64,000 nucleotides of DNA from the NCBI GenBank assembly GCA_030704615.1, contig CM060734.1, positions 15,500,001 through 15,564,000 on the forward strand. The letters are read 5' to 3'. The stretch comes from Takakia lepidozioides. Taxonomy: Eukaryota; Plantae; Bryophyta. The notes under the pieces are model-generated. The model searched no databases and was not told the DNA's origin. It saw only the letters and a list, made by a program, of their open reading frames with translations. Position numbers and translations under genes: made by a program. Of the stretch, positions 11,960 to 34,100 are shown in pieces. Numbering within the stretch: position 1 is the stretch's first letter; each line of letters starts with the position of its first letter.

Positions 11960-12990
11960 CAACTTCTAGCCATTATGACGGACCTAGGATACCCAGCTGA
12001 TGCCATTCAACTCATTGGCAACATCTATACTGGCAGCTCCACAGAATATTCTGGCTCATACTATGGTTCCACCCCCCCCTATCCCAATTCTAAGAGGTGT
12101 TATTCAAGGAGACACCCTAAGCCCATATCTGTTCATCATCTTTTTGGAGCCCCTCCTAAGATGGATTGGTCGCGGCAAATTAGGCTATCGCTACAAAACC
12201 TCCGACAACACCATCTCTGCTGCAGCCTATGCAGATGATCTTGCCGTCCTAGCCCATAACCCTCAACATCTCAATAGACAAGTGGACAAACTATCTCGAT
12301 TCAACCAATGGTCTGGCATGGAACTCAGCCTCCACAAATGCGTTGTCACCGCAGCTACCCATTATAGCAAATTCACTAAGGCTACGACTGCCTCACACTG
12401 TAAGTTGCATATCCACTACCAAAATAAAAACTTCTCCTTCTTAGGCCCTGACGAACCCTACACCTACCTAGGCATACAACTTGTCCCCTCACTTACTTGG
12501 AACCTACAAAAATCCACTACAATCGCTAAACTAACTGACAGAAGCATGGCCAATCTTCAGTTTCTATCCGCCCCAAACTCTCTCTCATTCAAACTGTACT
12601 CAAACCTCAAGTCCAATACTCTTTTCACGCTGCACCCTTCTCCCTCCCAGATATCAAACTAATCGACAAACATTTCATTCAACTCACTAAATGCATATGC
12701 GATCTACCCACCAGCACCCCCAACGCCCTTACCCAACAGATAGCTATGGCATAGGTATATCCCACTAATTACCTCCTACACCCGCACCCTAGGCACACAG
12801 CTACAAGAAGCTCTCAATGACCCTGGATGTCTAGGACTTATCTACAGGGGTCTCCTTCAATTCCTGGCCACTAAATACAATGGCCTTTACTCCCTGCCAA
12901 CCCTTCATCCCCAATCCTGCCACCACTCTCCCACGGCTAGAACTCTATACATCTTACGCCAAATGAACATAAGCATACAAACCGATCTGC
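11960..12990 (+). mobile_element. Non-LTR retrotransposon (LINE) reverse transcriptase fragment
   Basis: GVIQGDTLSPYLF, AYADDL and YTYLGI motifs; frameshifted. Confidence 0.88.
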
Positions 12991-13049
12991 CTGCTTGTAC
13001 CACTATCCATTTTCTATTGTCTCTCTTCTAATGCTAATCATTTGAAGTG

Positions 13050-15131
13050 TGATGATTGCAGGAGCTTGTGGAGGATCCGGCACTGAGTAATGACGTGCTG
13101 ATAAAATCGCTACGTACCTGGCCTGCTAAGATAGTGTGCTCGACGGATGAGCTGCGACTGGTGACTATCTCCAAGGTTCTGAACAAGCCCAACAAGGAGA
13201 ATCTTTACGAACCGTCTTTCTATGAGAAGATCCGTCACTGCAGAAGATATTACCATTACAAGGAGCGGCCCCAGAAGTATGATGAGAATTGACGGGTTGA
13301 GACTCAGCAGTGGAAGGTGAGTGTGACCACGGGAGGTCTCCTGTCATTTCTTCCCATTCATCTATCACTGCAGCGATGCAATGGATGTCTACATTATAAT
13401 TGATCGCTATCCAGTTTCCTCGCCCCCACACCAGCCCCACATCTGCGGTCCCAGCACCTTCTCTTCCGTTGAGGTCTTTTGGAATGTGTTCTGCTTCGTA
13501 ATGTGGTGCTTCTCTAGCGCTTCATTCTCCAATCTGGTGACATTATCGATTTGGAAGAGATCCACACACGTGTACAGAAATCCTTAAAAAACCAAATGAC
13601 CATCAAAGTTTGAAATTTTGATGGTTAGTTGGGTTTTTAAGGGTCTCTTTACAAAGGTGTGACTCTCTTCTAGGTCGAGAATGTCACCAAATTGGTAGAC
13701 ATGGATGGAGAAGCACCGCATTACGAAGCAGGAGACACTCCAAAAGGAGCTTCAAAATGCAAGACACCCTTGAAAGGAGCTTGATCAATGGGTGATTTTT
13801 CGCTGCTTGTGATTTTCGCTGTTTGCTGGAAGTTAGCTGGAAGTGTTGGCTGAATGTGAAAGTTAACAAGGGAGACCTCCCGTGGTAGATAACTACACTT
13901 GCTGGAATGTGCAGGATTTCATTGTCAGAGCTCAAACCATTCTGGATGTGAAAAGTGACAAGGAGGCAATGCCACTTGTATTCACCTCCGATCGGACCTG
14001 GAATTACTGGACAAGAGTGTTCATAAAATGGGAGAAGGGCGAGCTCATTGACCCCAAAGGGAACATCCCCATGAAGGAGCAACCAACACTAAAAAAATCT
14101 AGCGTGGCTTGACTGCAGGGTTTGGACGACAGCCAGATTAGGAAGGTTGCCGCAATGTTACTCAAGAACAAAGTGTCGATGCGTCATCCATACACTGGGC
14201 CTGACCCTGATGTTCTGAGTCTTGAGGATTATTGCAAATACAAGAAGTTGAGGAGGCACATTATTGATGATATCATGGTCGGTTTTGGATTTAAGGAGCC
14301 GACGAAGGACAACCGACATCCATACACAAAGGCGGAGTGGACGGCCATCAAACATAAGTACGAGATCAACAAGGCCTAGTTTGTGCAGTTTAAGAATGCT
14401 CTCGGGAACACCTACCTTAACGCAAAAATGAAGGCAATGACGGGAAAGCATAAGCAACCACTTCAATTTCTGAATTTGATTCAAGCTGTGAAAATGCTTG
14501 CAGAGTCGCCCCGAGGTTCGCTGGATAGAGTTTACATGTGTGTGCGAGATTGGAAACAAGGCTCAGGAGATTGGGACGGTGGCAATGTTTGCCACAAAAA
14601 CATTTGAAGTTGTTTCGCTCATCATGATCAGCACATTGAATGCCCATCTAGAAAAACAGAGAATGAGTTCGCGGACCTCTTCAATGGCATAAGGTCAAGA
14701 AAAATCAGGACCAACATACTCTGTGTCATCACCGATACTGATAGCTCTCGTGAGCTGATAGCGTACATTCAATCCTCAAAGGGGAAATTCCTTATAGAGA
14801 CAAGCTTCTACATACCATCGAAGAGGGAGACATTTTTCAAGACAAGGAATTTTGAAAATCCGGTAGTTCATTTCCATTTCATTTTTCCGATGGCAGATGC
14901 GAAGTGGGATCACGTGGACGAGGTCGTGCGGAGGAGCATTACATCCGACGATCGATACATCCCAAGAGTGCTACATACAGAGGCGGACGAATCAAAAAAA
15001 TCCTCTGCAAGGTCGCTACTACAATAATGAGATCCAATCATCGGCCATCGACCAAGTCGTTGATATCTTCTGTCCAGAGGCTCTTCTATTGTTAATGTGT
15101 ATTGTGGCAGGATTGTCACATACTCGCTTCT
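13050..15131 (+). pseudogene. Degenerate multi-exon TE-associated gene of unknown family, possibly with an inactive MTase-like C-terminus
   Basis: Chain of protein-like ORF pieces broken by stops (13056, 13882, 14122, 14383, 14897). Acceptor GGCAG at 14896 and donor GTAAG at 15132. Confidence 0.4.
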
Positions 15132-15199
15132 GGTAAGAACATACAAACTCAACTCTTAATTTTACTTCTTGTAAACCCCATTATTATCGTGCTAGGGAC

Positions 15200-16850
15200 A
15201 GTAATAGATGATGTAGGGAGATCTCCCGTCCTCCATTGACGGGAGATCTCCCTTCCTAGCCATGACGGGAGACCTCCCGTCCTCCTGTTGACCACAATAC
15301 TGATACCCAAATGATTAGAATCATTTTATTAGAGGACTTTCCCGAGTGCGTCCAGATTCCTACAAAGTAATACACGAGATTTTAGGTAACACACTGGCGA
15401 TGTTACCTAAGATCTTGTAGATCACTCTGTAAGTTTGACAGTGCACAAATGGGGAGTATGTCTCTGCTTGTGAATGCTCTGTCATTGCTTCAAATGATGA
15501 TGGGTTGAAAGTGTGTGTGGACAGAAGTCCATTGACGGGAGATCTCCCGTCGTCCGTTTGACGGGAGACCTCCCGTTCTTCTTATATGCGTCTTAGTATG
15601 AACCTCCGGTGGTAATTAAGATAAATCGGGACAGAAGTGATACCCATGTGATTAACCACATTCATTACGGGGATTTCAAAAGTGCCCGAACATACTTACC
15701 TAGTAAACCACAAGTTTTGTGGTTAACTTGATAAGTATGGGCAGGCATAACTTTAAGTAATTCCCAGATTGTGAGAGCTCTGATATTGCTTCAGATGATG
15801 GGTTGAAATGTCCTTAGGAAGTTCCCATATTTTCCACGCGAGTTTACGTCCTCCTTCGACGGGAGGCCTCCCGTCCTCCTTTGACCAAGTTCATCAGATG
15901 TGTCTTTTAGTGTGTCCAGTTTGTAGAATTTGGATCATTCTCTAGTTTGAACCTTCTCCCTTCCGGTCTATTGGCCATTCAAGTATTTCAAGATGAACCT
16001 CGCGTAGGACTTGGCTGGCACGACACGCTACAGATACATAAGTGATTAGTAACATTCATTACGGGACATTTCGGAGCGGAGCCAAATACTTACAGAAGGT
16101 AACGCAAGTCTTTATATTACACATTGGCGATGTAATCTAAAATCTTGTGTGGCCTTCATGTAAGTCTGGCCATGCACAAGCCTGAATTATCACTGCTTAA
16201 AATGATGATGGGTTGAAAGTGTTAGTTGGCAGAAGTCCATTGAACATCCTTTTGACCATTCATTTGACCGATCATTTTGAGATGAACCTCGCGCAAGACT
16301 ACTGTGGCACAAACACTACTGATACCCACGTGATTAGCTACATTCATTATAGGACTTTTCTGAATGCGTCCGTATTCTTACAAAGTGAACACAAGACTTT
16401 AGTAAACACACTGGCAATGTTATCTAAGATCTTGGGTGTCACTTTGTAACAATGGCCATGCACATGCATGAAGTATGTCTCTGCTTTGAATGCTCTGTCA
16501 TGGCTTCAAATGATGATGGATTGAAAGTGTGTGTTGGCAGAAGTCGAATGACGGGAGATCTCCCAGGGTTACTTTGCTAGGAGACCTCCCGTTGTTGCTT
16601 TTCCGGAAGATATCCCGAGGTCTCTCGTCCTCGTAATGACCATTCTTTTCTGCCTCATTAAGATGACCAGTCTGGCACAACACACTATTAATAACCCAGG
16701 TGATTAACCACAATGATTAAGGGGATTTCAAGAGTGCATGATCAAACTTACCATGTAAACCACAAGACTTTATGTAACATTGACAATGTTATATAAGATC
16801 TTGTGGTTTACTTGATAAGTATGGCAAGCCAGAATCTTGAAGTAATTCCC
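15200..16850. repeat. Degenerate ~300-bp tandem units carrying the palindrome GACGGGAGA(T/C)CTCCCGTC
   Basis: Palindrome copies at ~15217, 15238, 15263, 15534, 15560, 15858, 16550, 16579. Recurring GATGATGGGTTGAAA and GATACCCA..TGATTA blocks. Confidence 0.8.
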
Positions 16851-16851
16851 A

Positions 16852-17477
16852 TGTCGTACACCTAAGCATCGTGCCACAACATACATCGTTGTCCACACAC
16901 AATATAAGCACACAATCCTAGAAAGCTATGCCACAATGATAATGGAAGTGAACGCAATGGAAACACTCCACTCATGAATCCACTCAATCACATAGAGAGA
17001 GAGAGAGAGAAAAGACTCCGGCCGAAGCTGGCGTAACTAAGAGCCACTTCGCCTTGCGGTTACTGCCCTCTTTCGGGGGTGGGCTCAATCACATAAACTA
17101 AGTTAAGCCAAGGGCACCTTTGCTAAAGGAATCCACCCTACAAAGCCCTCACCACACTCTCTCTCAATACCTAGAGCTATGGAGGTGGGAGAGGCTCATG
17201 GAGGCTCAACTACAAGAAGTTGAGCCTCCTCAACCCTCATAAGGGGAAAACCCATTCCCATGTGCTTGACACCTCACTTGGCATATGAGACCAAATGAAG
17301 TCCCAACACACAAAATGCACATATAAATATCCAAATGTCCTAGCTAACTAGAAGTAGGTAATTCTAGTTAACCATGACTAAAACCATGACAGCTGTCGTG
17401 TACCTAAGCATCGTGCCACAACATACATCGCTATCCATACACAATCTAAGCACACAATCCTAGAAAGCTATGCCACA
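16852..17477 (-). repeat. 3' LTR of the PHD-bearing gypsy element
   Basis: On the minus strand a PPT (CTAGGGGGGCGAT, 17490-17478) directly precedes TGTGGCA; the segment ends ..TACGACA at 16852. Confidence 0.65.
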
Positions 17478-17733
17478 ATCGCCCCCCTAGTTGGTGATTA
17501 GGTCCCTCTAACACCGGATAGCTGACAAGTATCCACCCAATAAGATCATCGCTTGATCTTCAATTGTACAAGTCCCAACATCTGAAGTCGATAGATCAAG
17601 AGGCCGGGTGCAAAAGTAGCCCCATCGTTAGTCGCCTGTCTGTAATCCATGATCTTCAATTGAGTATCCATGACGTTGAACTCCCACTAGCTAGACCTTG
17701 GATCACTTGTCAACTTCACCATTTTCATGCCCA

Positions 17734-19661
17734 CTACCTTTGTCCAAGGCAGTGTGGACACAACCATTCTCCACTAGGAACCTCCTCAAGTGGCGGTGTC
17801 AAGCCTCTCATGTGCCACCCCCTTGAGCATTTGTCACACACCAACATGGTTGCGGCACCACCAGCATGCCCACATAGCATGCAACGCAACCCTGCAGGTA
17901 CCACTGCAAGGTTGGGATTTATCCTCCCATCCACATGTGGAAGGTGACATGGCGCACAATTGCGCACATTATAAGTACACAGCAGGAGCAACCGCAAGGT
18001 GTGGCTTTCCTTAATGCACGATGTGAAGAAGTTTGTCCATCTCTTTCTGCCAGGTAGAGACAAAGCAATATTCCCCTATCTCCCGCTCACTCAAATGGGG
18101 GCTCTTAGTAGCATGATTTGTTATTCTTCCTGATGTTTACAAAGTTCATGGGAGATTCAGCTTGGTCTTAGCAGGCCGTGTTTCAATCTCTGCCTGCTCA
18201 GCTGCACCGTGGTGGTTCTCACATACCAATTCGACATGCTGTGACATCCAAGGTTGTAGGTGCTGTCTGCTGAAGATACACATAGTCCCCAGGGTTGAAT
18301 CTCCGAAAACCTGGTCGATATCCGCCTCCACGTATGATGGCATACCTCAATGTGTCTTGGTGTTGGGCAATAGCAAAGTTCTCAAAAGCCATAGGCATGA
18401 CTCTCTTGAACAACTCTGCCCGTTGGTCATACGCTTGTGTCCACGCGTCCGGATCATCAAGGTCAAGGACTACTACAGCCTCCCTGCGAATAAATACAGG
18501 CAAATCTGGCTCTCGGCTGAAGAGAAGAAAGTAAGGTGAGAAGGATGCAAGTGACGTTTGTTTGCTGAACTATAGCCCATAGCCAACCAAGGCAGCTGAT
18601 GGTCCCAATCTCCCAGGTGTCCCTTCTGCAAGCCGTACTTGTGCAAACCCCTCTTGACTATTTGAACAACTCTCTCCGCCAAGCCATCAGCCTCGAGATG
18701 ATCCCGAGAAGTAGTGCGGTGATCTATCAAGGCTTGCTCACACAAAGCCTGAAACTCCCCCAAGAACTCTCTCCCCTGGTCCGTGAGTACCTCGGCTGGA
18801 GCACCAAATTGGCTAAGCACTCAATCTAAGAATGCATACGCCGCCCCCTCACTTGCCTTGTTAGGCAATGGCACTAGCTCAATCCATTTGGAGAAGTGTT
18901 CCACCATCACCAACACATACTTGTTGTGGCGCATCGTCAGTGGCAATGGTCCCGCGAAGTCAAGACTCCACCGATATCCCAATCCCATAATGGGTAAATG
19001 ATGCAATTGTGGAGTAGGTGCATTAAAAGAAGCATGCACCCTATCACACACCATGCACCTTGCCACTAACAACATCTGTGTGCATGCCCCGCCACCAATA
19101 CTGCCCTTGCAGCAAACTATGAGTGTGCCGCATCCCAAAATGTCCCAACTCCTCATGGGCATGGCGTACCAATCGCGCTCGTTGTGTTGGATGAGGCACA
19201 ATCCTCACTCGTCCATCCTCCCATACTCGGAGCAGGTGAGTCCCCTTCCACTTGAACCTCTTGGCCCGTTGTAGGATCCGATCTCTCTCCTTAGCAGTAG
19301 TCACACTGGCTGTTGTCTCTCCGGTACAAAGGTAGGCCAACACCGCTGCATCTTCATGCATATCCTTAGCACCACCAAGCTCCTGATTGATCTCTGGATC
19401 CTCATGCACACTATCTCCATGACCAATCACATGGGATGGACCAGCTTGAGCTCCCATTGCTAGAATGCACAAAAAGGCAGATGCATGCCATCCTGGCACC
19501 ATCTCCTCATCTCTCTCACCATGCCACCGAGCTCCAGTGTCATCATGTTTGCTCGTGCATGGATTACGACTCAACCCCCCATCTGTATCCCGATTGACTA
19601 CACCGGCTCGATGCACCACCTGGAAGTTGTACTCTTGAAGCATAAGTGCCCACCGTGCAAG
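17734..19661 (-). mobile_element. Decayed Ty3/gypsy pol 3' half: end of RNase H, integrase, C-terminal PHD finger
   Basis: LARWALMLQEYNF; HEELGHFG..CMVC zinc motif; WSLDFAGP, LTDQGREF, DGLAER (DDE); CMLC..VCDKCSRGWH..WLCPHC (C4HC3 PHD, one Cys mutated). Confidence 0.88.
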
Positions 19662-19899
19662 CAGGGATGCCTCGGCGTGAGCCTGGTCACGTGAGCGCGT
19701 GAGCGCAATTGCGCTCACGCCACGTCACCTTGCGCCAATGCCACATCACGGGGCTCACTCCACGTCATCACACTTGAAGACCGCGTCACCACGCGCCCAA
19801 GAAGAAGTGGAGTGTATTCCCGCGGATTGGCACCCTTTACCGTGGAAACAAGCTGGACGACATAATAAAAGGCAGTGGTCATTCCCACCTGAAAGCAAC

Positions 19900-20270
19900 A
19901 GATGAATAAAGGATGGATGAATGTACAGTTGGATGATAAACAGATGGATGAGTGTGAAAAATGAATGTAGATGGATGAATGAGGGATGGATAAGAGTCAA
20001 ATGGATGAATGTATAATGGATGTTGAGTAATGAAAAACATTCATGACAGGAAGATGCATGACTAAAATTTTAGACGAATGCACAACGTATATGACATGAG
20101 TGTGGAAGGTTTGTGGGGTGGATTAAAGAGTACATAGGATGAATGTACAATGGATGTTGAACAAAGGAAAACATTCATGAATGGAGCACGCATGAATACA
20201 CTGTAGATGAAAGCACAATGGATATGACAAGAGTGAGGTAGGTTTGTGAGATGGATTCATACATATTGCA
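19900..20270. repeat. GGATGA(A)-rich repeat tract (TE subterminal-like)
   Basis: Many GGATGAA/TGGATG copies plus a ~120-bp duplication. A related TCATCCATCC tract lies at 59330-59460. Confidence 0.6.
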
Positions 20271-20697
20271 AATTAAATGGTAGTTGATGATAGTTTTTTC
20301 TTTCCAAAGGAACAACTACGGTGGAGGAAGGGGATTCAACGTTTTCTAAAGAGGATGAAACAGAATATTAAAAGAACATAGTTCAGTCTGACTCAGAGTC
20401 AGTACAATGTATCCCCACTTCCTCTACATCTAAGTCTAAGTATTTAAGAACTCCGGATCTACGCTGGCTACACCTACGGTCGGGCAGTAAAAATTCAGGG
20501 GATAGGGACTCGGCCGCGTGAAGTGCCATTGCTTCGGCATAATCAGGAAGCAGAAAATTGCAGACTCGCCACAAATGACTGTATCTCTTGAAGATCCACC
20601 GCTGCCTTTCCTGAAAGACAGCCTGAAAAAGTTATTACTGTAACTTTGATGTTATTGAGAAATTGAGTATGACTTCCAAAGTGGGTTTAGCACTTAC

Positions 20698-22554
20698 TCA
20701 CATGAAAAGTCGTTGTCGACCTGCTTATCTTTGGGATCGTCATCATTTCGAATTTGAATCCGATCAGTCTGTGTGCCTGAAGTGGAGCTAGACAAAAGGG
20801 GGAGGAGCACTGTGTTGTAGAGGTCAGAATCACCCTCCATGCCAAAAAGGCTTCTTTCGTCTGCCTTGCATGCATGGTAAGTTGCAACTGCACCAGACAG
20901 GAGGACATGAACAGTTTGGTGGGGGGGATTTAAGCAGATGGAACTGGTGAAATAAAATCAATTCGGAAGGGAGAGAACGAACCTGTGGACACAGAAAGAT
21001 CGACCACCCGTGCAGAGTGGTGGCTGCATGATTCCAGCAGTATTTGCATGAACGCTGGGGATTTTTCCTTTGCACCTCCCCAGGGAGTGACATCTGGTCT
21101 CTTGAGAGTCTGACTGGACTGCATAAAGTTGTATAAAATGTCATCGACATGCGGCTCATAGGGGGGGTTGACTAAACAACCCTGGTCAGAAATCTCAAAG
21201 CTGCGGATGGAAGATGGTGTCTTTGAGGTGCGAATCCTCCACAGGCAGATCGCCTCGAACATCCTCGTCTGCCAAAGATAACAGGTTAGTGTGGTAAACA
21301 CAATCTATAGTAAATCGGCTATTCAGAACTCAGGCACAAAACAATCATTTTTATCACGAATCAGTGATGATCGGTGTCGATCATGACAGATTCTTCTAAA
21401 GTGGAGTTGCAGAGAACATTGAAACTCATCATGAAAGCACAAGCAGAAGGGAGACGGCATACCAGCTGACCAGGGAAACCCCATTTCACAAGGTAGAGGC
21501 TGTTCACACAATTTCATGTGCGCAAAACTTCAAACCCTGAAGACTTCAGGTATGATGCCAATGCCCGACGACTATCTTTGTCACATGACTGAAAAAGCAG
21601 AAGTGTCCCTGCATCAGAGAGGAAATTATTACAGAACCCGAACACCCAACTCCAGTAGTTGTCCTCGAATTTGTTCCAGCCTGGCGTCTTGCCCTTTGGA
21701 AGAACTTCTGGCACAGTCTGGTCATCCTGGATGTCGAGAATGACAATGTCAGCCGCATATGTTTTCTGCACACCGCACACGAAGGTGGGACCTGTGCTCA
21801 CCTGCAACAGACATGTTTTTTTTCAGAACGATGGCAAGAATGTTTTCAAAGAACCAGACTGAAATACTGCCAATGAAACTTTCAGAGAAAAAGGAAAGAA
21901 ACTGGAATTCTCACCAGATTGAGGAATGAGATTATGTTGTCCCAGGTAGGCGAAGGCACCCCAGTGTATCCTCTCTTTCGACTCTGCATCATTGACAGCC
22001 AACCCTCATTGACAATTTTAGTCTCTCCTGCCGAATCAGAACGGGAAGGGTGTGGCTTGGCATCGAACACGCACTGAACTGTGCGGGTATATCTTCCAGC
22101 AGTGAAGTCCTGCCCACTCTCCATCTCCTTTTCTTTCTCCTTCCCCTTGTCCTTTTCCTTCTCTTTGGACTTGGCTTTGCTGGTGAGATGGCTATGACAT
22201 CAAGAGCCTTGTCTTTTGGTTTGCGGCCCGTCTTCTTTCCCTTCTGCGGCGTTCCCTGAGCATTAGGCTCCTTGGCAGCCAATGTTGCTATGTTTCTTTG
22301 GTACTCTTCGTCAGTCAGAGGCGCCAGCATCTCAGCATTATTGTTCAAATATTTCATATGCTGTTCTTGAAAGGTCGTGTGCTCCGGTGGGCAGTCAAGG
22401 TACCAGCCACAGTCTCTGAAGTGAGAAGGACTCCAGTCCTTCAATATCCCTGCAGTATACATGGTTGGATCGTTTGCAGGGTTCGACCACATGTCAAGAT
22501 AGTCTGGAATACCGCTCAGGTGATTTCCTTCTATAAGCACATATTTTGTGTACC
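20698..22554 (-). pseudogene. Intron-containing gene resembling beta-class N6-adenine/N4-cytosine DNA methyltransferases (N6_N4_Mtase-like), disabled
   Basis: Exons ~22554-21915, 21801-21463, 21268-20983, 20887-20698 with GT-AG borders in compatible phases. Motif order: ADIVILDIQD (IV-like), YWSWVFGFCNNFLSDAGTLLLF, EKSPAFMQILLESCS (X-like), RVVDLSVST (I-like), ATYHACKADERSLFGMEGDSDLY (II-like). In-frame TGA at 21514-21516 and a frameshift near 22120. Confidence 0.65.
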
Positions 22555-22659
22555 TGTTAAACAGGAGATAAATCCCAACCTACCAAAGCGCGAAGTGAGT
22601 AAGATGCAAGTAGCACAGAATGAAAAAAATATGGAATGAAATGGCTCTGAGAACTGCTC

Positions 22660-23130
22660 CAAGGACCTCTCAGGACCACACGACAGCTCCGGATGTGAAT
22701 GTCGTCAACGCCATTCAAAACATTCCATTCAATGATACTGTAAATACACCCTAATCCACGTGAATGCAAACTCTCGCTTTGGAATGACACAGACATAGAA
22801 GTGAATGTCGTCAACGACATTCACTTTGGATTTGTGAATACACTGCTAATCAAGCCTAATGATTTCTCAAAAGAGGCAAAATCATTGGATGGAAATCAGA
22901 AACTCGAGTAAGGAACCCTCCCCAAAAACTCAATGGACATTCATAACGAACATAACACTGAGGACCTCATAATAACACTGGATGTGAATGGCGTCAACGC
23001 CATTCACAAAATTACGAACAAGGAACCAATTAATACACCCTTAGCCCCCAATCCATGTAAATTCAAATTGTCGCTGGTGAATGACACAAACATAGAAGTG
23101 AATGTCGTCAACGACATTCACTTTGGATCT
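22660..23130. repeat. Degenerate duplication (~298-bp period) with four GTGAATG(T/G)CGTCAACG copies
   Basis: Motif at ~22695, 22801, 22984 and 23099. Confidence 0.7.
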
Positions 23131-23131
23131 C

Positions 23132-23890
23132 TAAAAACTTGTACTTTCCAGGGTGCAGTTTCAATCCGTGTGCTTGCAAGTGCTCAAACACCACCTGAAG
23201 GTGTCTCTTATGCTCCTCAACTGTGGCACTAAAGATGACGATATTATCAATGTAGCACCGGGCGAAGTCTAGCCCCGCAAGAATCCTATCCATGACCCTC
23301 TGAAACTCTGCAGGAGCATTCTTCAACCCAAACGGCAGGAACCGCCATTGGTACAAGCAATCCTTCCCATGTTGGTCAATCCCCCAGAATGTCGTCTTTT
23401 GCTTGTCAGCCTCTTTGATTGGCAACTGGTGATAACCGGATCGCAAGTCCAATGTGCTAAACACCTTCGCATGCCCAATGGCATCAAAGATCTCCTCTGG
23501 AGTTGGCATGGCATATCTATTGGACTTAGTCTGACGGTTCACAGGACGATAGTCCCCACACATCCTTCTTTCTGTCCAATTGCCATAGATATTCTTCTTA
23601 ACTGGCATCACCGTTGCCGAGGCATACTCCCCGCCTGACAACTCCACCAATCCAGCTTCGAACAACTCCATAGTCCGTGACTGGATCAAAGACCTCTCCA
23701 TGTCACTATACATGTAGGGCCTTCAAAAAATTGGCGTGTCACTTGCCAAATCAATACGAATCTCCTGGCCCTTCAAACTCCCCAAATCCTTCAAACTGAA
23801 GGCAAAGCAATTTCTATAAGCCCTTAGAAATTGTTGGATCCTCCGTCTCTCTCCTCCGGTGACTGTAGGTCCAACATCTAGTCCCCAATT
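23132..23890 (-). mobile_element. Ty3/gypsy reverse transcriptase fragment (probably the same element as 17734-19661)
   Basis: [38 protein letters not shown] (mutated YIDD). Confidence 0.9.
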
Positions 23891-23894
23891 GTCC

Positions 23895-26130
23895 TCAGTG
23901 ACTGCAACCTTGGGTCCTGATTATCAGGTGCTGCCGTGATCTTGGCCAAGGCCATGTTACTGTCACCATGTTGGGGGGGGGGGGGGGGGGGTCGGCATGC
24001 TGGAGCTCGATCAGAGCTAACGGGCGGTATTGACCAGTCTGTGCATCAGGCGCGTTGTTGGCGTCACCCTGTGTAGTTGAGGAGTTAGTGATGCCTGGGG
24101 GTAGGGGTAACTTGGCCAACACCACATTTGCATGGTGAAAGAAATTCGCCAGATTTGCTCCAAGATTCTGGGTGATCGATTCCTTCAAGACAACAGATAC
24201 GCATGGTGTTCCTCCTGTTGTTTTGTCAAGGTGGTGGCCACCCACGATTCCATGGCAGAGAGTTCTCCACGAATATCCTTTCTTATCGATATGGCATGAG
24301 CAGCTAGTTTTTTGTCTATTTCAGACATCATAGCTCCGTGACCACGAGAAGATCCCGAGTCTGGTTTGATTGCAATTGAGTTCACCATGTCGGCTAGCGC
24401 ATGGTTGATGTTCGCCACCCGGAGTTTGTCAAGAATTTCCTTTGCCGGTGGTTTAGCTCCGTTCAGACTGTTGTTATGTGGCTCGAAGTTGACGTAGCGA
24501 TCGATAACCAACACATGCGGTTTGTTGACCCACTGTGTGTAAACACTTGGGTTTTTGCACGTAATCACGATCATGCCAGTGTGCTTGATCTTCTCTGTAG
24601 GAACAACCGAACAAAAATAGATTTGCGTGATGTTGTCTTTTCCAAAGACAGAGCGCATGGCGTCCTCGATAGCTGCATGTGGATACAGTTGGTTGAGATT
24701 TTTCACAACGAGCGTAAGTGCGTTTCTCTCCGCCACGATTTCCTGTGGGGTAGCTATTAAACTAGTCATGCTGGTTCGCCGATTTCGCAGCTGTGGTCTG
24801 ATCAGCGTACGCCCGAATCGGATGCCCTGTGTCAGCATCCTTTGTTTGGTGTCCTCAGAAGTGATGTATATGAAGCAGAACTTAGACTTTGGCCCAGTCT
24901 TGTGAGTATAGAGGATCTCGTACTCATCACCATGAACGTGAGCTTCCATGATGAGATGCATTGTAAGCTTGTGGCTGATCCGTGTAGGCTTTTGCTTGTC
25001 ATGTATAAAGAGAGATGTTCCATTGATGATTGTAGATCGAATGTTTTTTCCACCTTACCCTGCATTGGTATGCCAGAGGACATCTCTATGACAAAGGCTC
25101 GGTCGCCTTTCAAGAGGGCGATGCCATCCCTAGCTGGATTTAGCAACTCGACCTTGAAGATGCCAATCCAGTACTTGCTGGCATGTTTGGAGTAGGCCAT
25201 TATGGGTGAATACAGCGTAGTACCCAGTGGAATGTTCATCTCTGCAAAACGCTTCTTAGCCCTATAGACAGCTTGTTCTTTGGGCATGTCGGTCTCTCTA
25301 TCAAACCTGATCAGTATGTGGTAGGGCGTTGCGGAGAGTCCAGAGACAGGGTCGACGATGGTGCCTTTTGGCAGTTGAGTAAGCTGGTAGAGTTGGCCTT
25401 CGCGGCTGTCCGGTCGAGCTGTAGGAAAAAATAGTTGGGGTACGTGCGGGTAGGCCTTGAGGCCATGCCGCAGTTCGTAGATCTTAGACAGGCAGAGCCC
25501 AAGCTGCTCGAGTTCTGTTGTCGTGCGTGCCTCCGTGACAAATGGAAGTTCAGCATCGTGTGTATGTTGTTCAAGTGTGTGATAACCCATCCATAAGTGT
25601 GGCCCTCCTGGCGAGCTTGAAATTTCTAAGCATGGAGCTGGATCTGGCGAGAGAAATCCCCATGATTTTTTGGGATCGGAGTGGGTGCTTCCAGCCTCGC
25701 TGTTGAATGCACTGGAGGAGCGCTTGTTGTGCGGGCTGAGAGTCAGTGGCTGTGCAGGAGACGCGTGAGTGGCATGGAGCTGGGTCACCCGTTGATTCTG
25801 TGCTGATGGCGCTGGGGTTGGGGCAAGTTTGTCATGGACGTGAGCACTGTGGGACTTTGTCATGTTTTGTGTGGAGTGAGTTTGGTATGCTTGTGGAGTG
25901 GCGAAGAATTGTTTGTCGGATAAGTGCATGTCACTGACTTCCTCGTCGCCATCAAAGTGATGGAACATTTCTGCATCTGCGTCCTTGTGGTGCCCAATTT
26001 TTACCGAGAGTCGCTGAGCAAGGAAGTTCACCGGAGATTTGGAGCTGAACGTAGCCTTCCCTTTGTGTCTTGGCTGTTTTTGGATACTCCTCGAGCGTTT
26101 TTGGATAATACTAGATTTATTGCTAGACAT
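23895..26130 (-). pseudogene. Frameshifted ORF1-like protein (RRM-like segments plus coiled coil), probably from a non-LTR retroelement
   Basis: ORFs 24832-26235 and 24185-24961 join by a frameshift near 24965. LTLVVKNL..IEDAMRSVFGKDNITQIYF..TGMIVITC has RRM-like spacing. Family assignment is inference. Confidence 0.5.
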
Positions 26131-27513
26131 GTATGGAATGGAAGAGATTGAGTGAGGATGGGAGAATTTTGCTAAAAAATGACATCCCCAAAATGAGATC
26201 CACTTCATCGATCTCGTAAATGGTGAAGTTCTCACGCCCCTCCCAACTCCCTAGTTGAAGAGGGACGTCAAACACCAACCTCCACGCTACTTGTGGCTCT
26301 CCCTTGGCAGAGCGCACTTCATTAGAGGGCCCCACGTCAATTGTCGGGAGTCCTAACTTTCGTGCCGTTGCTGGTGTCATGAAGGAGTGCGACGCTCCTG
26401 TGTCCACTAACAACGACGCGTTAGTTCCGAAAATTACTCCGCTCACGAATATCAACTGACTTCCTTTACACAAAGCTCTTGCCTCTTGATATAACTCACA
26501 AGTGTAGTTGCATACATTGCAAGTCTTGGCGACCATCGCCTCCACCAAGCAGGTGATGGAGTATTCGGATAGCTCCGTGGTTGCCCGGGTCATGTTCAAC
26601 TGCCGGGGTTTCGGGCACTTCTTTGTCATGTGCCCGGGCTCCCCGCAATCAAAGCACACTCCATCAAAGGTCAACCTATGTCCGCCATAGGCCGCCACAC
26701 CTGATTTTCCTTTCGGAGCACCGGGTGCCGCCTTGACGTGCGAAGGCCCTCCATTTGGTTTCTATGCACCATTGTTGTCGCGTGGCCTATCCCACTTCTT
26801 TTCCGGTCAGAAGGAATCACCCTCCCACCGGACCTTCTTGTGGTTCAGCTCCGTACGGCTCTGTCTTTCGCCCCTGGGGACATCCGAGAAGCATTCAGCT
26901 CTTTCAATTGCCTCGTTCAAAGTCTTTGGTGACCTATTCTCTAACTTCCGCCTGGACCAAGGGGCCAGTCCCGCCACAAAGTTGAAGACCATTTCTGGTT
27001 GCGCCATGTCAGCGACTTCGAGCAATAGCACATTGAAAGCCTGAACATATCCCCGAATGTCATCGGTTTGTTTCGAGTTCCTCATCTTGTCCCGGGCGAG
27101 CCAGGACACGTTGAGGGGCACAAACTGATTTTTCATGAATTCCTTGAATCCACTCCAGCTCAAGGTCTCTCGGTTTGGCCCTTGGTCGAGAAGGCGTTTT
27201 TGCCACTATTGTTGAGCATAGCCCCTCAAGTAGGTGGGTGCACTACAAGGAATCGCCGAAATAACGACTCAAAAAACGACTGGAAACCCAGTCGTTTCAG
27301 TCAAAAAATGACTGGGCGACTACGAGTCCGAAAGGACAAGACCTATCGGACAGCCCAATCGTTCCAGTCATTACGTGGTTGGAGTTGTTCCAGTCAGTCG
27401 TGACGCCGACTGCAAGGTAATTTTTAAGGTGTGGCCACGTGGCGTCGCCACGCGCGTTGTTGACTGAATCTTGGACCTTGACCACAGTGGACTTTTGACC
27501 GGCGGGTTCCGAC

Positions 27514-28085
27514 CAGTGTTGGGCGGTTCTTAGGTTTTTTTAATATCCGCCGGGTCCGGATACTTGACAAATTAGAGAATGATATATCCTGCGGATCCGG
27601 ATATTAGAATAATTTGCATTTCTAATATCTGCCGGTTATGCATAGTGGAAGTTTTTAAAAATCTGCCGGATATAAATAAGTTTGAATATTTAGATTTTAA
27701 AATCCGACGGTTATAGAGTAATCCGGATCTAAATAATCATGAAATACAATTTTCTTTTTAAACAGGGGGATTGTAGCCCTGATTTAACTTTATTGAGATT
27801 TACTTGCATTTTTTTTAAATAATAATCAATTGAAATGATTAAAATTCCAATAAAATATTCATATTTTATTTTATTTTCTTGTATCCGGTTGAGATCCGGT
27901 ATTTTGGCTACATATCCGGATACAATCCGGTTATTAAACCTTTTTATATCCGACGGGTAGGATCCTATCCGGATCCTCCATTTTATGTATCCGCCGGATA
28001 TAAATAATAGCCGGATATCAAATAGTTGCCGGATCCGGATCCGGATACATTGATATCCTGATGACTCTATATCCGCCCAACACTG
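27514..28085. mobile_element. hAT-type non-autonomous element (MITE), 572 bp
   Basis: 13-bp TIRs CAGTGTTGGGCGG / CCGCCCAACACTG, 8-bp TSD GTTCCGAC, many ATCCGG/CCGGAT subterminal motifs. Confidence 0.95.
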
Positions 28086-28859
28086 GTTCCGACTTCCCCA
28101 CCGTGTGCACGCCGGGAATACAGCCGCATGGCTCGGTGTAAAAACTCCACTTGTTCTCTTGGAGGCAGGACACGCGCCGTAGCCGCGTTGCTTCACGCTG
28201 CTGAATAGTTACGATCTCGTACTACACGAGCACTAACCACTAGTTCAAAAATAACTAGCAAGTCGTTTCAACGACTGCACAGTCAGACTGCGAAGTTGTG
28301 AACTACATCTCGGAGTGCTGGACTCGTAGTAGTCCAGTCTAGCGGTTACCTTCAAGGACACGCGTGGCTTCCCGGGTCTCGCCACGTCCAGGCCTGAGGC
28401 CACAACACGTGGCGCAAGTGAGTTGTCTGCTGGTTGCCTTCACGACTTGCGAGTGGAGTCGACAACTAGAGTGTTGAAGTGACAGATGCAACTGGAGGTT
28501 TGAAATGCACTACCTCACTAGTGACTACATCGACTGTCGGTTGGGAACCAGACACTCCTACTGGTTGCACTGACTTGGGGGCTGCGACTTGTAGTTCATA
28601 CATGTGCAATATTATTTCTACTATGTCTGAATAGCAACACGGATGCGACGATCGATCTACTACGGCATTGCAACCAACACAATCCCTGCACACTGGGGAT
28701 GATCATGTCATTGCCTATGTGATTCAGACTTCAGAACATACAGACCATGCCATCAATGCACGAAATCAAATTAACTGCATGAACAAGAGCACGTGACAAT
28801 GTATTAAGATAACACCTCAAAATTGCCCCATACAATGCACAAATCCATGAGTCCGTAAC

Positions 28860-31000
28860 GACCAAGATTGGAACCTGTTTCTGGATACTTCTGTGTTGTC
28901 ACTTTGGCAGTATCATGTTAAAGTCACTCCAAACTATCAAAGGTTCACTCAACCAGCTAACTTGCAGAATTCAACATGAAAATTTAGGGCTGATTATGAT
29001 AAGAGGGGAAAACAGGGTGAAGTGTGTTGAAGAAGGTGCCTTGATTAGCAGTGACTGATTTTATGAATTGTGCCGCTGCTGCTGTGGCTTCCAGTTGACC
29101 ATGTACCCATGCAGGTTTCCCTTTCACATGGAATCATAGGTAATCGGGAGTTTGAAATCCGGCCCTCTTGGATGAATCTGGACTTATACTCTATCCTTGC
29201 TCCTTCAGCTATCCATGCGTCTGCACAAATCATGCATTCATCCTTGCACTTGTTGCTAGCAGATGACAATGACAGCATAGAGTTGTTCTAGGAAACACCC
29301 AACTTAGCTTATCACTCTAGTTCCTATGTTAAATTGTGTCGGCTACTCTCTGTAATCTAACAGGCATTCACCTTTTGGTCTCGATTGTCTCACCGTTGAC
29401 TGGGGTCAGAAACGTGTTCATTCCCCAGCTTTTCCTCGTCTCTGTTACCTGTTTTCCGATACTTTCCTATTGTCACATTTGCAGTATCATGTCAAAGTCA
29501 TTCCAAACTAGATTCACTCAACCAGCTAACTTGAAGAATTCAACATGGAAATTTAGGGCCGGTTCTGATAAGAGGGAAAAACAGGGTGAAATGTGTTGAA
29601 GAAGGTGCCTTCATTAGCAGTGCCGATTTTATCAATTGTCTCGTTGCAGTTGCGGCTTCCAGTTGACCATCTTCCCATGCAGGTTTGTTGTGGCTATCCT
29701 TCCAAAGGGAATCATAGGTAATCTGAAGGTTGAAATCCGGCCCTCTTGGATGAATCTGGACCCACACTCTATCCTTGCTCCTTCAACCATCCATGCCTCT
29801 GCACAAATCATGCATACATCCTTGCTTTGCTGCTAGCAGCTGACAATGACAGCCTACATTTGTTCTAGGAAACACCCAACTCAGCTTATCACACTCATTC
29901 CTATGTTGAATTGCATGTGCTACTCTCTGTAATTATACAGGCATTTACCTTTTTGCCTCGGTTGTCCCACCATTGACTGGGGTCAGAAAAGTACTCATTC
30001 CACAGCTTCTCATCATCTCTGTTACATGTTTCTGGATACTTAACTATTGTCACTTTGGCAGTATCATGTCAAAGTCACTCCAAACTATCAAAGGTTCACT
30101 CAACCAGCTAATTTGCAAAATTCAACATGGAAGAAGAAGGATTGTAATAAGAGGACAAAACAGGGTGAAATGTGTTGAAGAAGGTGCCCTCATTAGCAGT
30201 GTCTGATTTTATCAATTGTGGCGCCGCTGCTGCTGTGGCTTCCAGTTGACCATCTACCCATGCATGTATGGAAAAGTAGGTAATGTGGAGCTTGAAATGC
30301 GGCCCTCTTGGATGAATCTGGACCCACACTCTATCCCTGCTCCTTCACCTATCCATGCCTCTGCACAAATCATGCATACATCGTTGCCTTGCTGCTAGAA
30401 TCTGACAATGACAGCCTACATCTGTTCTAGGAAACACCCAACTCAACTTATCACTCTAGTTCCTATGCTCAATTGCATCTGTTACTCTTTGTAATCCAAC
30501 AGGCATTCACCTTTTTGCTCGATTGTCCCATCGTTGACTAGGTCAGAAAAGTATTCATTCCACAGCTTCCCCTCGTCTCTGTTACCTGTTTCTAGATACT
30601 AATCCTGTTGTCACATTGGCAGTATCATGTCAAAGTCACTCCAAACTATTTAAGGTTCACTCAACCAGCTCATTTGTAGAATTCAACATTTAGGGCCGAT
30701 TTTGATCAGAGGGAAAAACAAGATAAAACGTGTTGAAGAAGGTGCCTTCATGAGTAGTGCCTGATTTTATCAATCGTGCCAATGCTGCTGGGGCTTCTAG
30801 TTGACCATCTACCCATGCAGGTTTTCTTGTAGCTATCCTTCCACAGGGAGTCATAGGTGATCTGAAGCTTGAAATCCGGCCCTCTTGGATGAATCAAAAC
30901 CCACACTCCATCCCTGCTCCTTTAGCTATCTATGCTTCTGCACAAATCATGCATACATCCTTGCCTTGTTGCTAGCAACTAACAATGACAGCCTAGAATT
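28860..31000. repeat. Tandem array of ~4 copies of a ~570-bp unit inside the CACTA
   Basis: GCAGTATCATGT..AAAGTCA at ~28907, 29481, 30058 and 30619; GGCCCTCTTGGATGAATC occurs in each unit. Confidence 0.9.
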
Positions 31001-31144
31001 CATGCAGCAAACACGACACCACATCTCGTTCAGCCATACCACCCAAACCCAGAATTAGGACAGCACTCTGATTCCATCCACTGTCACCAAAGTCAGTCCA
31101 ATATCACCCCTTTAGTCAAGTGCAATTATGGGCTGACTTCCCAC

Positions 31145-34100
31145 CTATGCTGAGTAGGCCCCACTATCATTTCCCGTGGATATGCCAAAACCATTGGCCA
31201 GCTTCTCACTGTGGTGGCAAAGAGAAAATTCCTTTTCCTCCTCCCCCACATCATGCAATACAAAGCGCCTGTCAGGCACATACCCCGCCTTCTTCATCTT
31301 CCCAGCCAATCTTCTCAACTCAGCATGGATTTCCTTAATTCTGAGATGCAACTTGTCATCTACAACGAAGGTGTGCACCCTGTTGCCAACCTCAATGCAG
31401 CATCAACCTGGCTCGTTTCTAACCCCTTTGACCTTCATCATTCTTCTCACCTTTGCAGTATCATCCCACCTGCCAGCTGCAGCATAGATGTTTGAGAGCA
31501 ACACATAAGTCGCGGCATCTTGTTCAGCCCACATGAGGGTAGATGTTGTTGCATGTTCAGCCATCTCCACATTGCCATGGATTCTGCATGCACCAAGCAA
31601 GGCCTTCCACACCACAGCACCTGGATTTATAGGCATTTTATTAATCATGTCCACTGCCTCATCCGGTTGTTCCTCAGGTCCAAGAAGGTCCACCATGCAG
31701 CCAAAGTGCTTTACTGTCGAAGTGACACCATGATCTTGACTCAGGGAATCAAAGTAGCGTCTTCCTTCATTCAGTAGGCCAGCATGGCTGCATGCAGAGA
31801 GAACATATATAAAGGTGATATGCTCGCCGTTCTTTTGCATTCCTTCAAATAGTTGCATGACCTCCCTATGACAACCATGATGTGCATATCCTGCGATCAT
31901 CGCATTCCATGACACAACATCTTGTTCAGCCATATTGTCGAACACTCCCTTTGCATCCTCCATGCACCCACATTTGGCATATATGTCCACCAGGGCAGTG
32001 TTCAGGATCACATCTGGTACAATTCCAGCTCTGACGATGTCGCCATGGACCTCTTCGCTCTTTTCCAGGGCTGCCAGGCTTGCACACGCACTGCAAACGC
32101 ACACAAACATGATGTAGGACCGGGCTTTACCCCGTCGCACATCATTTGCTCATAGGTCTCCAAAGCCTCCATCCCATGTCCCTGCTGTGCAGACCTTGCA
32201 AGCATCGCACTCCACGACACCACATCTCGTTCAGCCATAGTGTTGAACACTCCCTTTGCATCCTAGATGCACCCACATTTTGCAAACACGTCCACCAGGG
32301 TATTGTTCAAAATGACATCTGGTACAATTCCAGCTCTGAAGATGTCGCCATGGACCTCTTTCCCCTTTTCCAGAGTTGCCACGGCAGTGTTTAGAATGAC
32401 ATTTGGTACCATTCCAACTTTGATGATATCCCCATGCACCTCTTTGCCCTTCTCCAGGGCTGCCAGGCTTGCACAAGCATTGCAAATCTACACAAACATG
32501 ATGTGCTTCCCCCATCATTCACTCATAGGTCTCCAAAGCCTCCATCCCACGTCCCTGCTGTGCATACCCCGGAAGCATCGCACTCCACGACACCACATTT
32601 GGTTCAGCCATAGTGTCGAACACTCCCTTTGCATCCTAGATGCACCCACATTTTCCAAACATGTCCACCAGGGTAGTGTTCAGAATGACATCTGGTACAA
32701 TTCCAGCTCTGAAGATGTCGCCATGGACCTCTTTCTCCTTTTCCAGAGCTGCCAGGGCAGTGTTTAGAATGACATTTGGTACAATTCCAGCTTTGACGAT
32801 ATCCCCATGCACCTCTTTGCCCTTCTCTAGGGCTGCCAGGCTTGCACGACGCCACATCCTGTTCAGCCATAGTGTTGAACACTCCCTTTGCATCCTAGAT
32901 GCACCCACATTTTGCAAACATGTCCACTAGGGTATTGTTCATAATGACATCTGGTACAATTCCAGCTCTGAAGATGTCGCCATGAACCTCTTTCCCCTTT
33001 TCCAGAGCTGCCAGGGTAGTGTTTAGAATGGCAGCTGGTAGAATTCCAGCTTTGACGATATCCCCATGCACCTCTTTGCTCTTCTCTAGGGCTGCCAGGC
33101 TTGCACGATGCCACATCCTGTTCAGCCATAGTGTTGAACACTCCCTTTGCATCCTAGATGCACCCACATTTTGCAAACATGTCCACTAGGGTATTGTTCA
33201 TAATGACATCTGGTACAATTCCAGCTCTGAAGATGTCGCCATGCACCTCTTCCCCCTTTTCCAGAGCTGCCAGGACAGTGTTTAGAATGACATTTGGTAC
33301 CATTCCAGCTTTGATGATATCCCCATGCACCTCTTTGCCCTTCTCCAGGGCTGCCAGGCTTGCACAAGCATTGCAAATGCACACAAACATGATGTGCTTC
33401 CCCCATCATTTGCTCATAGGTCTCCAAAGCCTCCATCCCACGTCCCTGCTGTGCATACCCTGCAAGCATGGCACTCCACAACACCACATCTCGTTCAACC
33501 ATAGTGTCGAACACTCCCTTTGCATCCTAAGATGCACCCACATTTTGCAAACATGTCCACCAGGGTATTGTTCAGAATGACATCTAGTACAATTCCAGCT
33601 CTGAAGATGTCGCCATGGACCTCTTTCCCCTTTTCCAGAGCTGCCAGGGCAGAATGACATTTGGTACAATTCCAGCTTTGACGATATCCCCATGTACCTC
33701 TTTGCCCTTTTCTAGGGCTGCCAGGCTTGCACGACGCCACATCTTGTTCAGCCATAGTGTTGAACACTCCCTTTGCATCCTAGATGCACCCACATTTTGC
33801 AAACACGTCCACCAGGGTATCGCGAATGCACACAAACATGATGTGCTTCCCCCATCATTTGCTTATAGGTCTCCAAAGCCTCCATCCCACGTCCCTACTG
33901 TGTAGACCCTGCAAGCATCGCACTCCCCGACACCACATCTCATAGGTCTCCAAAGCCTCCTTCCCACGTCCTTCATGTTGTGCATACCCTGCAAGCATCG
34001 CACTCCACGACACCACATCTCGTTCAGCCATAGTATCAAACACTCCCTTTGCATCCTTGATGCACCCACATTTTGCATACAAGTCCGCTAGAACAGTGTT

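Follow-up and report, generated by a model that had tools for sequence, protein, structure and literature searches.

A pseudogenised, front-truncated copy of an intron-bearing gene family with a beta-class methyltransferase-like domain among gypsy fragments of Takakia lepidozioides

Between remnants of Ty3/gypsy retrotransposons, a stretch of 64,000 nucleotides (nt) from Takakia lepidozioides (assembly GCA_030704615.1, contig CM060734.1, positions 15,500,001 to 15,564,000 of the forward strand; hereafter the window) carries a gene-like segment in which the motifs of a DNA methyltransferase seem to be distributed over several exons. The question raised by this locus is what the segment represents: an active enzyme, a passenger of the retrotransposon, a stranded cellular gene, or a fortuitous array of short motifs. 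The answer reached, with high confidence, is that positions 20694-22553 hold a pseudogene that has lost its front part and belongs to a multi-copy gene family with introns. The fuller explanation, in which this fragment derives from a transposon-type family that combines a ParB-like with a beta-class methyltransferase-like domain and is targeted to its own element, is regarded as probable.

A sequence-only reading of the window had proposed that the motif peptides appear in beta order once four exons are spliced, with no single open reading frame (ORF) showing them. All five peptide blocks quoted in that reading are present on the minus strand of 20694-22553, and the exons, assigned by reading three frames together with GT..AG boundaries, reproduce the proposed order, no single ORF covering all four. 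Related sequence was found in three public runs, all of one species, and aligned to 20300-23100; the contigs of the run termed X1 are 90-95% identical to the window and represent a paralog of about 93% identity, and their RNA nature is presumed from their behaviour. Relatives from other assemblies were retrieved as loci L001-L007, L009, L010 and L021. The gene model is as follows.

21915-22553, minus strand: exon "1", with a CGWYLDCP motif and then a basic/acidic linker; AG acceptor at 22554-22555.
21802-21914, minus strand: intron 1, GT..AG, its acceptor conserved in L002, L003 and L004.
21463-21801, minus strand: exon 2, the N-terminal half of the methyltransferase-like domain, motifs IV to VIII.
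21269-21462, minus strand: intron 2, GT..AG; the X1 joint runs from 21266 to 21463, with two mismatched letters at the exon edge.
20983-21268, minus strand: exon 3, a variable region followed by PWGGAKEKSPAFMQILLESCS..RVVDLSVST, corresponding to motif X and motif I.
20888-20982, minus strand: intron 3, GT..AG, phase 1 (after the first codon base).
20697-20887, minus strand, with the stop codon at 20694-20696: exon 4, ATYHACKADERSLFGMEGDSDLY, the end of motif I and then motifs II-III, with an acidic tail.

In full-length relatives exon "1" is an internal exon, and colinear tblastn matches to it occur in L002-L005 and L009-L010. Its donor, CTG/GTGAGA, falls at the joint seen at 21915 in an X1 contig. 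That joint (21765 to 21915) employs an in-frame acceptor 36 nt downstream of the predicted one, removing 21766-21914, so that exon 2 then starts at 21765. X1 contigs thus omit 21766-21914 and 21269-21462 exactly at GT..AG, indicating that a paralog is transcribed and that two of the three predicted introns are removed, which bears out the proposal of a spliced, eukaryotised gene. The position of intron 2 is occupied by an intron in other loci, its splice sites being readable in L002 and L003. Intron 3 retains its position, phase and GT..AG ends in L002, L003 and L004; L006 agrees in position and GT donor and has no AG at the acceptor, L001 has an in-frame unspliced stretch at this point, and L009 lacks the intron. 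Exon 4 was placed by alignment with L001-L006 and L009, in which a ...F(S)C-x ending is conserved. At the C-terminus itself (window 20697-20720; L002 4290-4313), all members have an acidic tract followed by (D/E/N)-F-C-x or F-x-C-x, the endings recorded across the family being DEFCCK, DDFCT, NEFCM, NIFCE, DFSCE and DFRSCK. No second copy of the gene was found within the 64-kb window.

The family to which this fragment belongs was recovered by an exhaustive phmmer search with exon 3 against 1.84 billion representative proteins, which returned 15 relatives (best E 2.6e-12), all of them unnamed short ORF fragments on eukaryote-like contigs from metagenome and Logan assemblies. As far as each contig reaches, the exon order is colinear in the retrieved loci, with all four exons found in L002-L004 and three in L001, L005-L007 and L009-L010, and splice sites are conserved among them. 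L002 and L021 are intact, and several other loci carry frameshifts or stops. Intact members, reconstructed from the other loci, encode roughly 900 amino acids (aa) or more and are arranged as a ParB/sulfiredoxin-fold domain, two conserved middle regions, the CGWYLDCP segment with its charged linker, and the methyltransferase-like domain; the window copy retains only the last two of these parts. Between L002 and L021, which show no stops and whose introns are 21-27% diverged, the ratio of nonsynonymous to synonymous substitution rates (dN/dS) is 0.07 for the first upstream (ParB-like) region, 0.26 for exon 1, 0.10 for exon 2, 0.21 for exon 3 and 0.19 for exon 4, and the family protein is therefore under purifying selection over its whole length. 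The family is also abundant. X2, a 1.75-Mb contig set apparently from a low-coverage run, contains 33 pieces at 85-99% identity spanning 20302-22872, and the unit is therefore a high-copy repeat. Twelve members of one exon-3 cluster lie on different ENA contigs, and at least three separate loci (L001, L009 and L010) come from a single assembly, ERZ25073694.

Several individual loci depart from the common arrangement. L009 (10001-13247) is intron-poor, its ParB-like region being continuous with the next exon, its middle region and exon 1 forming one 381-aa ORF, and its exons 3 and 4 being contiguous. In L007 (1409-2413), an ORF matching DUF7869 (Pfam E 2e-45) replaces the N-terminal CGWYLDCP part of exon 1 upstream of exon 2. 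Along L004 (9000-12324), the GC content rises from about 34% to about 49%, and compact, bacterial-like genes appear (pentapeptide repeat, SPW repeat, HflX-like GTPase), which could reflect either a chimeric contig or a locus adjoining genes that descend from organelles or bacteria.

The relationship of the family to methyltransferases was examined at the level of profiles. Spliced models were built with X at breaks, and the enzyme profile comprised 15 diverse PF01555 sequences, including 11 added phage enzymes. When the 8-member spliced family was compared with this profile by hhalign, a match of 97.9% probability was obtained (E 4.4e-13, score 94, 217 colinear columns), in which family positions 14-245 lie on YhdJ 30-262, DLVIIDLPEG on DLIFADPPYN, and VVDLTTSTGAS on VLDPFAGSFTT. 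This single colinear alignment displays the circularly permuted order IV-VIII, X, I-III, in keeping with the bacterial-type beta-class N6-adenine/N4-cytosine (N6A/N4C) motif order that had been read from the sequence. Reversed and column-shuffled controls (n=32) scored 13.9±2.4, with a maximum of 22.9. Taken separately, the N half aligns at enzyme positions 30-102 with P 7e-6 and the C half at 197-262 with 96.6% probability and E 5.7e-10. A second hhalign comparison gave 96.5% and E 1e-9 for exons 3+4 (alignment A6, headed by the intron-free L009 ORF) against the enzymes (A7), and 84% and E 7.6e-6 for exon 2 (A2) against PF01555-type enzymes at positions 22-87, while an earlier one against a narrow YhdJ-only profile had reached 78% and P 1.8e-5.

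Other searches gave weaker results. The spliced window sequence alone yields only P 0.004 against the enzyme profile, and the family profile is therefore essential. The sole Pfam match of the intron-free L009 ORF is PF01555 (E 0.012, 16.0 bits versus a cut-off of 26.7), and the top PDB sequence match of the exon 3+4 profile is the beta-class enzyme DpnA/M1.HpyAVI (5hek), over motifs X-I-II, at E 0.31; both are weaker, independent indications of the same homology. Look-alikes of exon 3 in the ESM Atlas were confined to unnamed or leucine-rich-repeat-like clusters, a word-indexed protein search with exon 2 gave nothing in the allowed length range, and Rfam had no match over the whole window. A further explanation is that the resemblance is a chance array of short motifs in junk derived from transposable elements (TEs), for which the negative or sub-threshold Pfam and hidden Markov model (HMM)-versus-PDB searches and the P value of the lone window sequence can be cited. 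An E value of 4.4e-13 over 217 colinear columns, two independently significant halves, 32 failed controls, and exons conserved at dN/dS of about 0.2 make that explanation scarcely credible. Instead, homology of the C-terminal domain to the beta-class (PF01555, N6A/N4C) DNA amino-methyltransferases appears, with high confidence, to be supported at the profile level. Membership in MT-A70 was rejected, since the C-terminal D-x-x-x-G-x-G-(S/T)-T...GR...G-x-E block is PF01555-like, as judged from known motifs.

Within this family, the window copy is dead, as had been proposed. The positions concerned are the following.

22165-22175, minus strand: site of a frameshifting deletion, at which the reading frame changes; private to the window copy.
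21514-21516, minus strand: in-frame TGA replacing the conserved Trp of the W-x-C-x-N motif.
21724-21735, minus strand: motif IV position, DIQD, aligned to the DPPY of true enzymes by the family alignment and the hhalign columns.

Behind 22170, the paralog contigs of X1 and X2 carry 13 extra nt, restoring the frame (one X2 contig carries 1 nt). At 21514, they read C, not T, giving TGG, that is Trp, a residue also present at this position in L002, L003, L004, L006 and L009. Both ORF-breaking lesions, the 13-nt deletion and the TGG to TGA change, are thus private to the window copy, having no counterpart in the paralog contigs, and its DIQD derives by decay from the D(I/L)PEG of the family. None of the conserved coding regions that lie upstream of exon "1" in relatives occurs in the window, which consequently holds only the 3' half of the gene. 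Front truncation, the 13-nt deletion, the Trp-to-stop change and the decayed motif IV together mean that no functional protein can be made from it.

Whether intact members could act as methyltransferases depends largely on motif IV, which reads as follows in the family.

L001, L003, L004, L006: DIPEG
L002, L021: DLPEG
L005: DLPDG
L010: DCPEN
L009: DQPHG
Window: DIQDD

The departure from DPPY noticed in the window copy is therefore a family-wide feature, D[IL]PEG being the usual form and DCPEN and DQPHG occurring in divergent members; intact copies, in L002 and L021, have DLPEG. The catalytic tetrapeptide (D/N/S)-P-P-(Y/F/W/H) is not matched in the family. In the motif (D/N/S)PP(Y/F/W), the aromatic position is one of those that define the amino-methyltransferases and stacks on the flipped base; of the 9 family sequences read, 8 have an acidic residue there, Glu or Asp. 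An NPPY in exon 3 (21158-21169, minus strand) was considered as motif IV and rejected: it lies in a variable region, none of the relatives has it, and in the hhalign alignment motif IV falls in exon 2. Elsewhere in the domain, motif X is kept as REKSP-F-MQ-LIE and motif I as V-V-D-L-T-x-(G/S/A)-T-G, followed by GR-H-x-x-G-F-E-x-D. The Asp of motif I is kept, with GTG after it in L003 and L005, GTC in L006, STG or ATx elsewhere and STV in the window, and the Glu of motif II is kept, being Asp in L009. The S-adenosylmethionine (SAM)-binding side of the domain accordingly looks largely preserved, and, judging from these motifs, SAM binding would be retained.

One explanation is that the family encodes a fully active DNA N6-adenine/N4-cytosine methyltransferase marking its own element, with D(I/L)PEG as a form of motif IV that still works. 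No block of exon 2 is better conserved than the motif IV loop VDLVIADIPEGLPVPG, also across distant members, and exon 2 has a dN/dS of 0.10; the phage PF01555 enzymes of the comparison set include motif IV variants DLPY and DILY, so that an enzyme can do without the second proline; in one divergent member the motif reads DQPH and places His at the aromatic position; and the SAM-side motifs are kept. The replacement of the base-stacking aromatic by Glu or Asp in all but one of the sequences, and of the first motif I glycine by Ser or Ala in many members, leaves full canonical activity a doubtful prospect. Since the motif IV loop is so strongly conserved, it can be argued that the site still does something, and the balance tips slightly towards canonical N6-methyladenine/N4-methylcytosine (6mA/4mC) transfer having been lost or changed to another chemistry or substrate.

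The front half of the family protein, missing from the window, provides a second clue to its nature. The first upstream region has 23 homologs, which share a DGNHR motif with G, N and H invariant and D and R nearly so. Its AlphaFold2 (AF2) model has a mean predicted local distance difference test (pLDDT) score of 76.6, exceeding 85 in the core, and the families listed first by Foldseek are in line with a ParB/sulfiredoxin-fold reading. In intact relatives, this ParB-fold domain lies in the same gene as the methyltransferase-like domain. ParB folds are commonly fused to N6_N4 methyltransferases in phages (10.1101/2025.10.10.680097), so that the domain order of the eukaryotic family reproduces a prokaryotic/phage architecture, and phage or prophage fusions of this kind are likely to be its ultimate source. 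For residues 60-218 of P0161 (L002 390-1046), the look-alikes returned by a language model were fungal DUF3723 (0.95), ParB_N (0.92) and phage DUF6551 (0.91). DUF3723 is an accessory gene of fungal Starship elements and serves here as a lead; no link between the ParB-like domain and DUF3723 was seen at the HMM level.

A third clue lies in the repeats flanking the fragment.

22695-23121, unstranded: four 24-nt palindromes, GTGAATGTCG-TCAA-CGACATTCAC and variants (10+4+10), in two repeat units of ~290 bp.
19697-20315, unstranded: 3' flank repeats, comprising a palindrome at 19697-19720, 21-nt tandem repeats and repeat units of ~134 bp.

A pattern search for the 24-nt palindrome found 4 sites against 0 expected by chance, and the array, with the direct repeats D12 and D15, stands directly upstream of the truncated gene. 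In L004, 11 copies of a different 24-nt palindrome are situated upstream of the homologous gene, ending ~580 bp before it; in the short contigs L002 and L003, no palindromes were seen. Exactly at the left edge of the insert is a perfect 24-nt palindrome, GCGTGAGCGC-AATT-GCGCTCACGC, followed by three 21-nt tandem repeats (19697-19767). L021 has a similar CGTGAGC...GCTCACG palindrome about 0.7-1 kb past the end of its gene copy, which may be due to chance. As an element common to the window (19697) and L021, the GCGTGAGC...GCTCACG palindrome was rejected: it amounts to a single exact site and is therefore probably a coincidence.

The fragment and its repeat tracts occupy a stretch of ~3.4 kb (about 19720-23140) bordered by retrotransposon sequence.

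23135-23839, minus strand: gypsy reverse transcriptase (RT), Pfam RVT_1 E 3.7e-27, cut near the end of the RT domain.
17737-19718, minus strand: RNase H tail, integrase (H2C2 + rve) and PHD finger, by Pfam matches.

The RT, the gene fragment and the block of RNase H tail, integrase and PHD finger all lie on the same strand, and a tblastn alignment with the intact polyprotein of 41269-45945 stops at 23135, the end of RT and most of RNase H being missing at the junction. The reported position of the insert between the gypsy RT and RNase H, with repeats on both sides, was thus recovered; the retrotransposon seems to be only the landing place of the fragment, which looks like a piece of another repeated unit and not like cargo among the pol domains. 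Gag-protease (26168-27241) shows 81% protein identity to the chromovirus at 41269-45945, compared with only 33% for the RT (23135-23839), so that at least two gypsy lineages contribute to the surrounding "element", which is a mosaic. No pair of long terminal repeats (LTRs) for it was found between 12000-17800 and 27100-46000. Among the neighbouring features, the PHD finger (17737-18063, minus strand, Pfam E 8.5e-10) is located at the C-terminal end of the integrase, the chromodomain site in chromoviruses; 41269-45945 (minus strand) is an uninterrupted 1559-aa Ty3/gypsy polyprotein with gag, zinc knuckle, protease, RT, RNase H, integrase and chromodomain; and 24188-26235 (minus strand), between the gypsy protease and RT, contains two long ORFs of 467 and 258 aa that have no Pfam match.

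A location between RT and integrase on the same strand, together with the existence of retrotransposons with adenine methyltransferases (10.64898/2026.05.21.726589), invites the explanation that the gene is cargo of the gypsy retrotransposon and moves with it, like the DAM-LTR and DIRS methyltransferases. Against this, the gene is interrupted by three spliceosomal introns and does not share the reading frame of pol, the end of RT and most of RNase H are absent where gene and element meet, and the X2 copies cease to match the window at 22872 and 20302, short of the flanking RT and integrase, so that the junctions are unshared. Among relatives from other assemblies, only L010 lies near an RT/integrase, which is on the opposite strand and outside the gene, and the methyltransferases known from retroelements belong to the Dam type instead of the PF01555 type and reportedly do not occur in Streptophyta. 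Transport by the gypsy element is consequently judged very improbable. Most simply, the insert is read as part of the family's own element from which the interior has been lost: the palindrome array comes first, the ParB-like and middle exons are deleted, and exons 1-4 and the 3' repeat tract follow.

It may also be asked whether the family needs an element of its own. If it were an ordinary cellular gene, a copy of which became trapped among TE insertions, then the strength of purifying selection, the conservation of intron positions and the transcription of a paralog would be readily understood, as would the lack of a transposase beside the retrieved relatives. An ordinary gene would hardly be expected in the copy number of the X2 set, in at least three loci of one assembly and in many pseudogenised copies, nor linked in two unrelated loci (the window and L004) to lineage-specific palindrome arrays, and the published algal counterparts are transposon accessory genes (PMC12477816). 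A cellular origin is accordingly rated as unlikely, if somewhat less so than transport by gypsy.

For a transposon-type family, a mechanism can be sketched by analogy with the phage fusions and the algal transposon accessory proteins. The family protein would be targeted to its own element through the ParB-like part, the adjacent 24-nt palindrome arrays may act as parS-like sites, and the methyltransferase-like domain would retain SAM binding while its motif IV aromatic is replaced, D-[IL]-P-E-G standing for D-P-P-Y. In a bolder form, to which a low probability is assigned, the protein would constitute a transposon self-recognition module: a ParB/Srx-fold nucleoside-triphosphate-binding domain would recognise private 24-nt palindromes, and the remodelled methyltransferase loop (Tyr to Glu) would perform a non-canonical modification or SAM-dependent sensing, marking or protecting the element's own DNA. 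If this is true, transposons would label themselves epigenetically by a system of which no plant example has been described.

Several observations weigh against the explanation preferred here, that of a transposon-type, element-targeted ParB and methyltransferase-like family. Regarding the element, no terminal inverted repeats were found around the insert, and no transposase domain was found in the scanned ORFs beside the retrieved relatives. Regarding targeting, canonical ParB has its parS site read by a helix-turn-helix (HTH) domain, and none was identified in the family's ParB-like protein; binding of the palindromes by the ParB-like domain would be pure inference from analogy. Regarding transcription, the status of X1 as an RNA run is a guess, and intron 3 lacks RNA confirmation because the sole transcript-like contig covering 20888-20982 (X1 record 1), one that is spliced elsewhere, reads through it; of the proposed splice junctions, those of introns 1 and 2 have support in X1, and that of intron 3 has its support in L002-L004. 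Regarding homology, Pfam gave no match to the six pieces of the window even at E<=10 and no match above a model's cut-off to any piece of the family, single-exon HMMs matched no methyltransferase among PDB sequences, HMM-versus-PDB comparison gave nothing significant, and the AF2 model of the C half (L009 exons 3+4) has a pLDDT of 49.7, too poor for a fold search. The PF01555 relationship anticipated by the sequence-only reading consequently emerges from the hhalign comparison of the family, and not from Pfam or HMMER searches with window pieces.

The interest of the family is that Pfam misses it, although at least some genomes express it and maintain it by purifying selection. A protein able to bind and modify the element that encodes it would amount to an epigenetic device borne by a transposon; a pseudo-enzyme would instead illustrate the re-use of such a device. 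The window copy, itself inert, documents only the family and its decay. Also present in the window is a pentatricopeptide repeat gene of the PLS class that has an E motif, as is usual for editing factors of land plants. According to PMC4738411, N6A methyltransferases are few in land plants; the literature searched contains no report of the family in land plants, and the Marchantia sperm 4mC enzyme was the only functional plant case of the N6A/N4C type found.

Several known systems can be compared with the family. The DAM-LTR and DIRS adenine methyltransferases share with the window fragment an association with TEs, prokaryotic derivation and a place beside a Ty3/gypsy RT; they are Dam-type, located in or beside pol, intronless and reported absent from Streptophyta (10.64898/2026.05.21.726589). 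Marchantia MpDN4MT1a/b and the bdelloid rotifer N4CMT are, like the family, eukaryotic genes of bacterial N4/N6 methyltransferase ancestry. They are host genes with a TSPPY motif and proven 4mC activity (10.1101/2021.02.12.428880; PMC8885841), and the parts of these sources consulted mention no ParB-like domain, which the family has, whereas SPPY occurs at the motif IV position of no family member.

The beta-class amino-methyltransferases, such as Escherichia coli YhdJ, Helicobacter pylori M1.HpyAVI/DpnA and phage enzymes, have the permuted motif order in common with the family. Shared features include a hydrophobic strand plus Asp ahead of motif IV, the W...L-x-D-x-G-x-L strand, the W-x-(K/C)-x-N hairpin, the (H-P-T-x)K-P or REKSP helix of motif X, the V-L-D-x-x-x-G-x-G-(T/S)-T and ...GR-x-x-x-G-x-E-x-D... 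blocks, and a protein end shortly past motif III. The family differs from PF01555 enzymes in its sub-cut-off Pfam score, its D(I/L)PEG without an aromatic residue, a first motif I Gly that is often Ser or Ala, its spliceosomal introns, and the placement of the domain inside a eukaryotic protein of ~900 aa. The phage and prophage ParB-CTPase-fold fusions follow the same order, a ParB fold and then a beta-class methyltransferase (10.1101/2025.10.10.680097); unlike the family, these prokaryotic versions are intronless and compact, with canonical DPPY or SPPY.

The closest counterparts are accessory genes of algal transposons. Sola1-1_Ec32 of the brown alga Ectocarpus, a giant DNA transposon, has an accessory gene for a 1104-aa protein with ParB-like and N4/N6 methyltransferase domains (PMC12477816). 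Similar proteins are cited there for green and red algae, and the authors propose that they bind and modify their own element. The Plavaka elements of the red alga Bostrychia (PAG2/PAG3) carry a PF01555+SET gene and a gene combining ParB-like and 2-oxoglutarate (2OG)-oxygenase domains beside tandem inverted-repeat arrays (10.1101/2025.02.11.637652). The algal proteins and the family have in common a ParB-like domain and a PF01555-type methyltransferase in repeated elements, and inverted-repeat arrays next to the ParB-like gene are found both in these algal transposons and in the window and L004. The likeness is one of description, not of sequence comparison, and there are differences: the algal carriers are Sola1 and Plavaka, their methyltransferase domains are detected by InterPro/Pfam whereas that of the family falls below the cut-off, and in Bostrychia the ParB-like and methyltransferase domains lie in separate genes, together with SET or 2OG-oxygenase domains, whereas the family unites them in one. 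The family thus represents, in a genome with land-plant-type features, a diverged form of the ParB-methyltransferase accessory genes of algal transposons, and a remodelled catalytic loop sets it apart.

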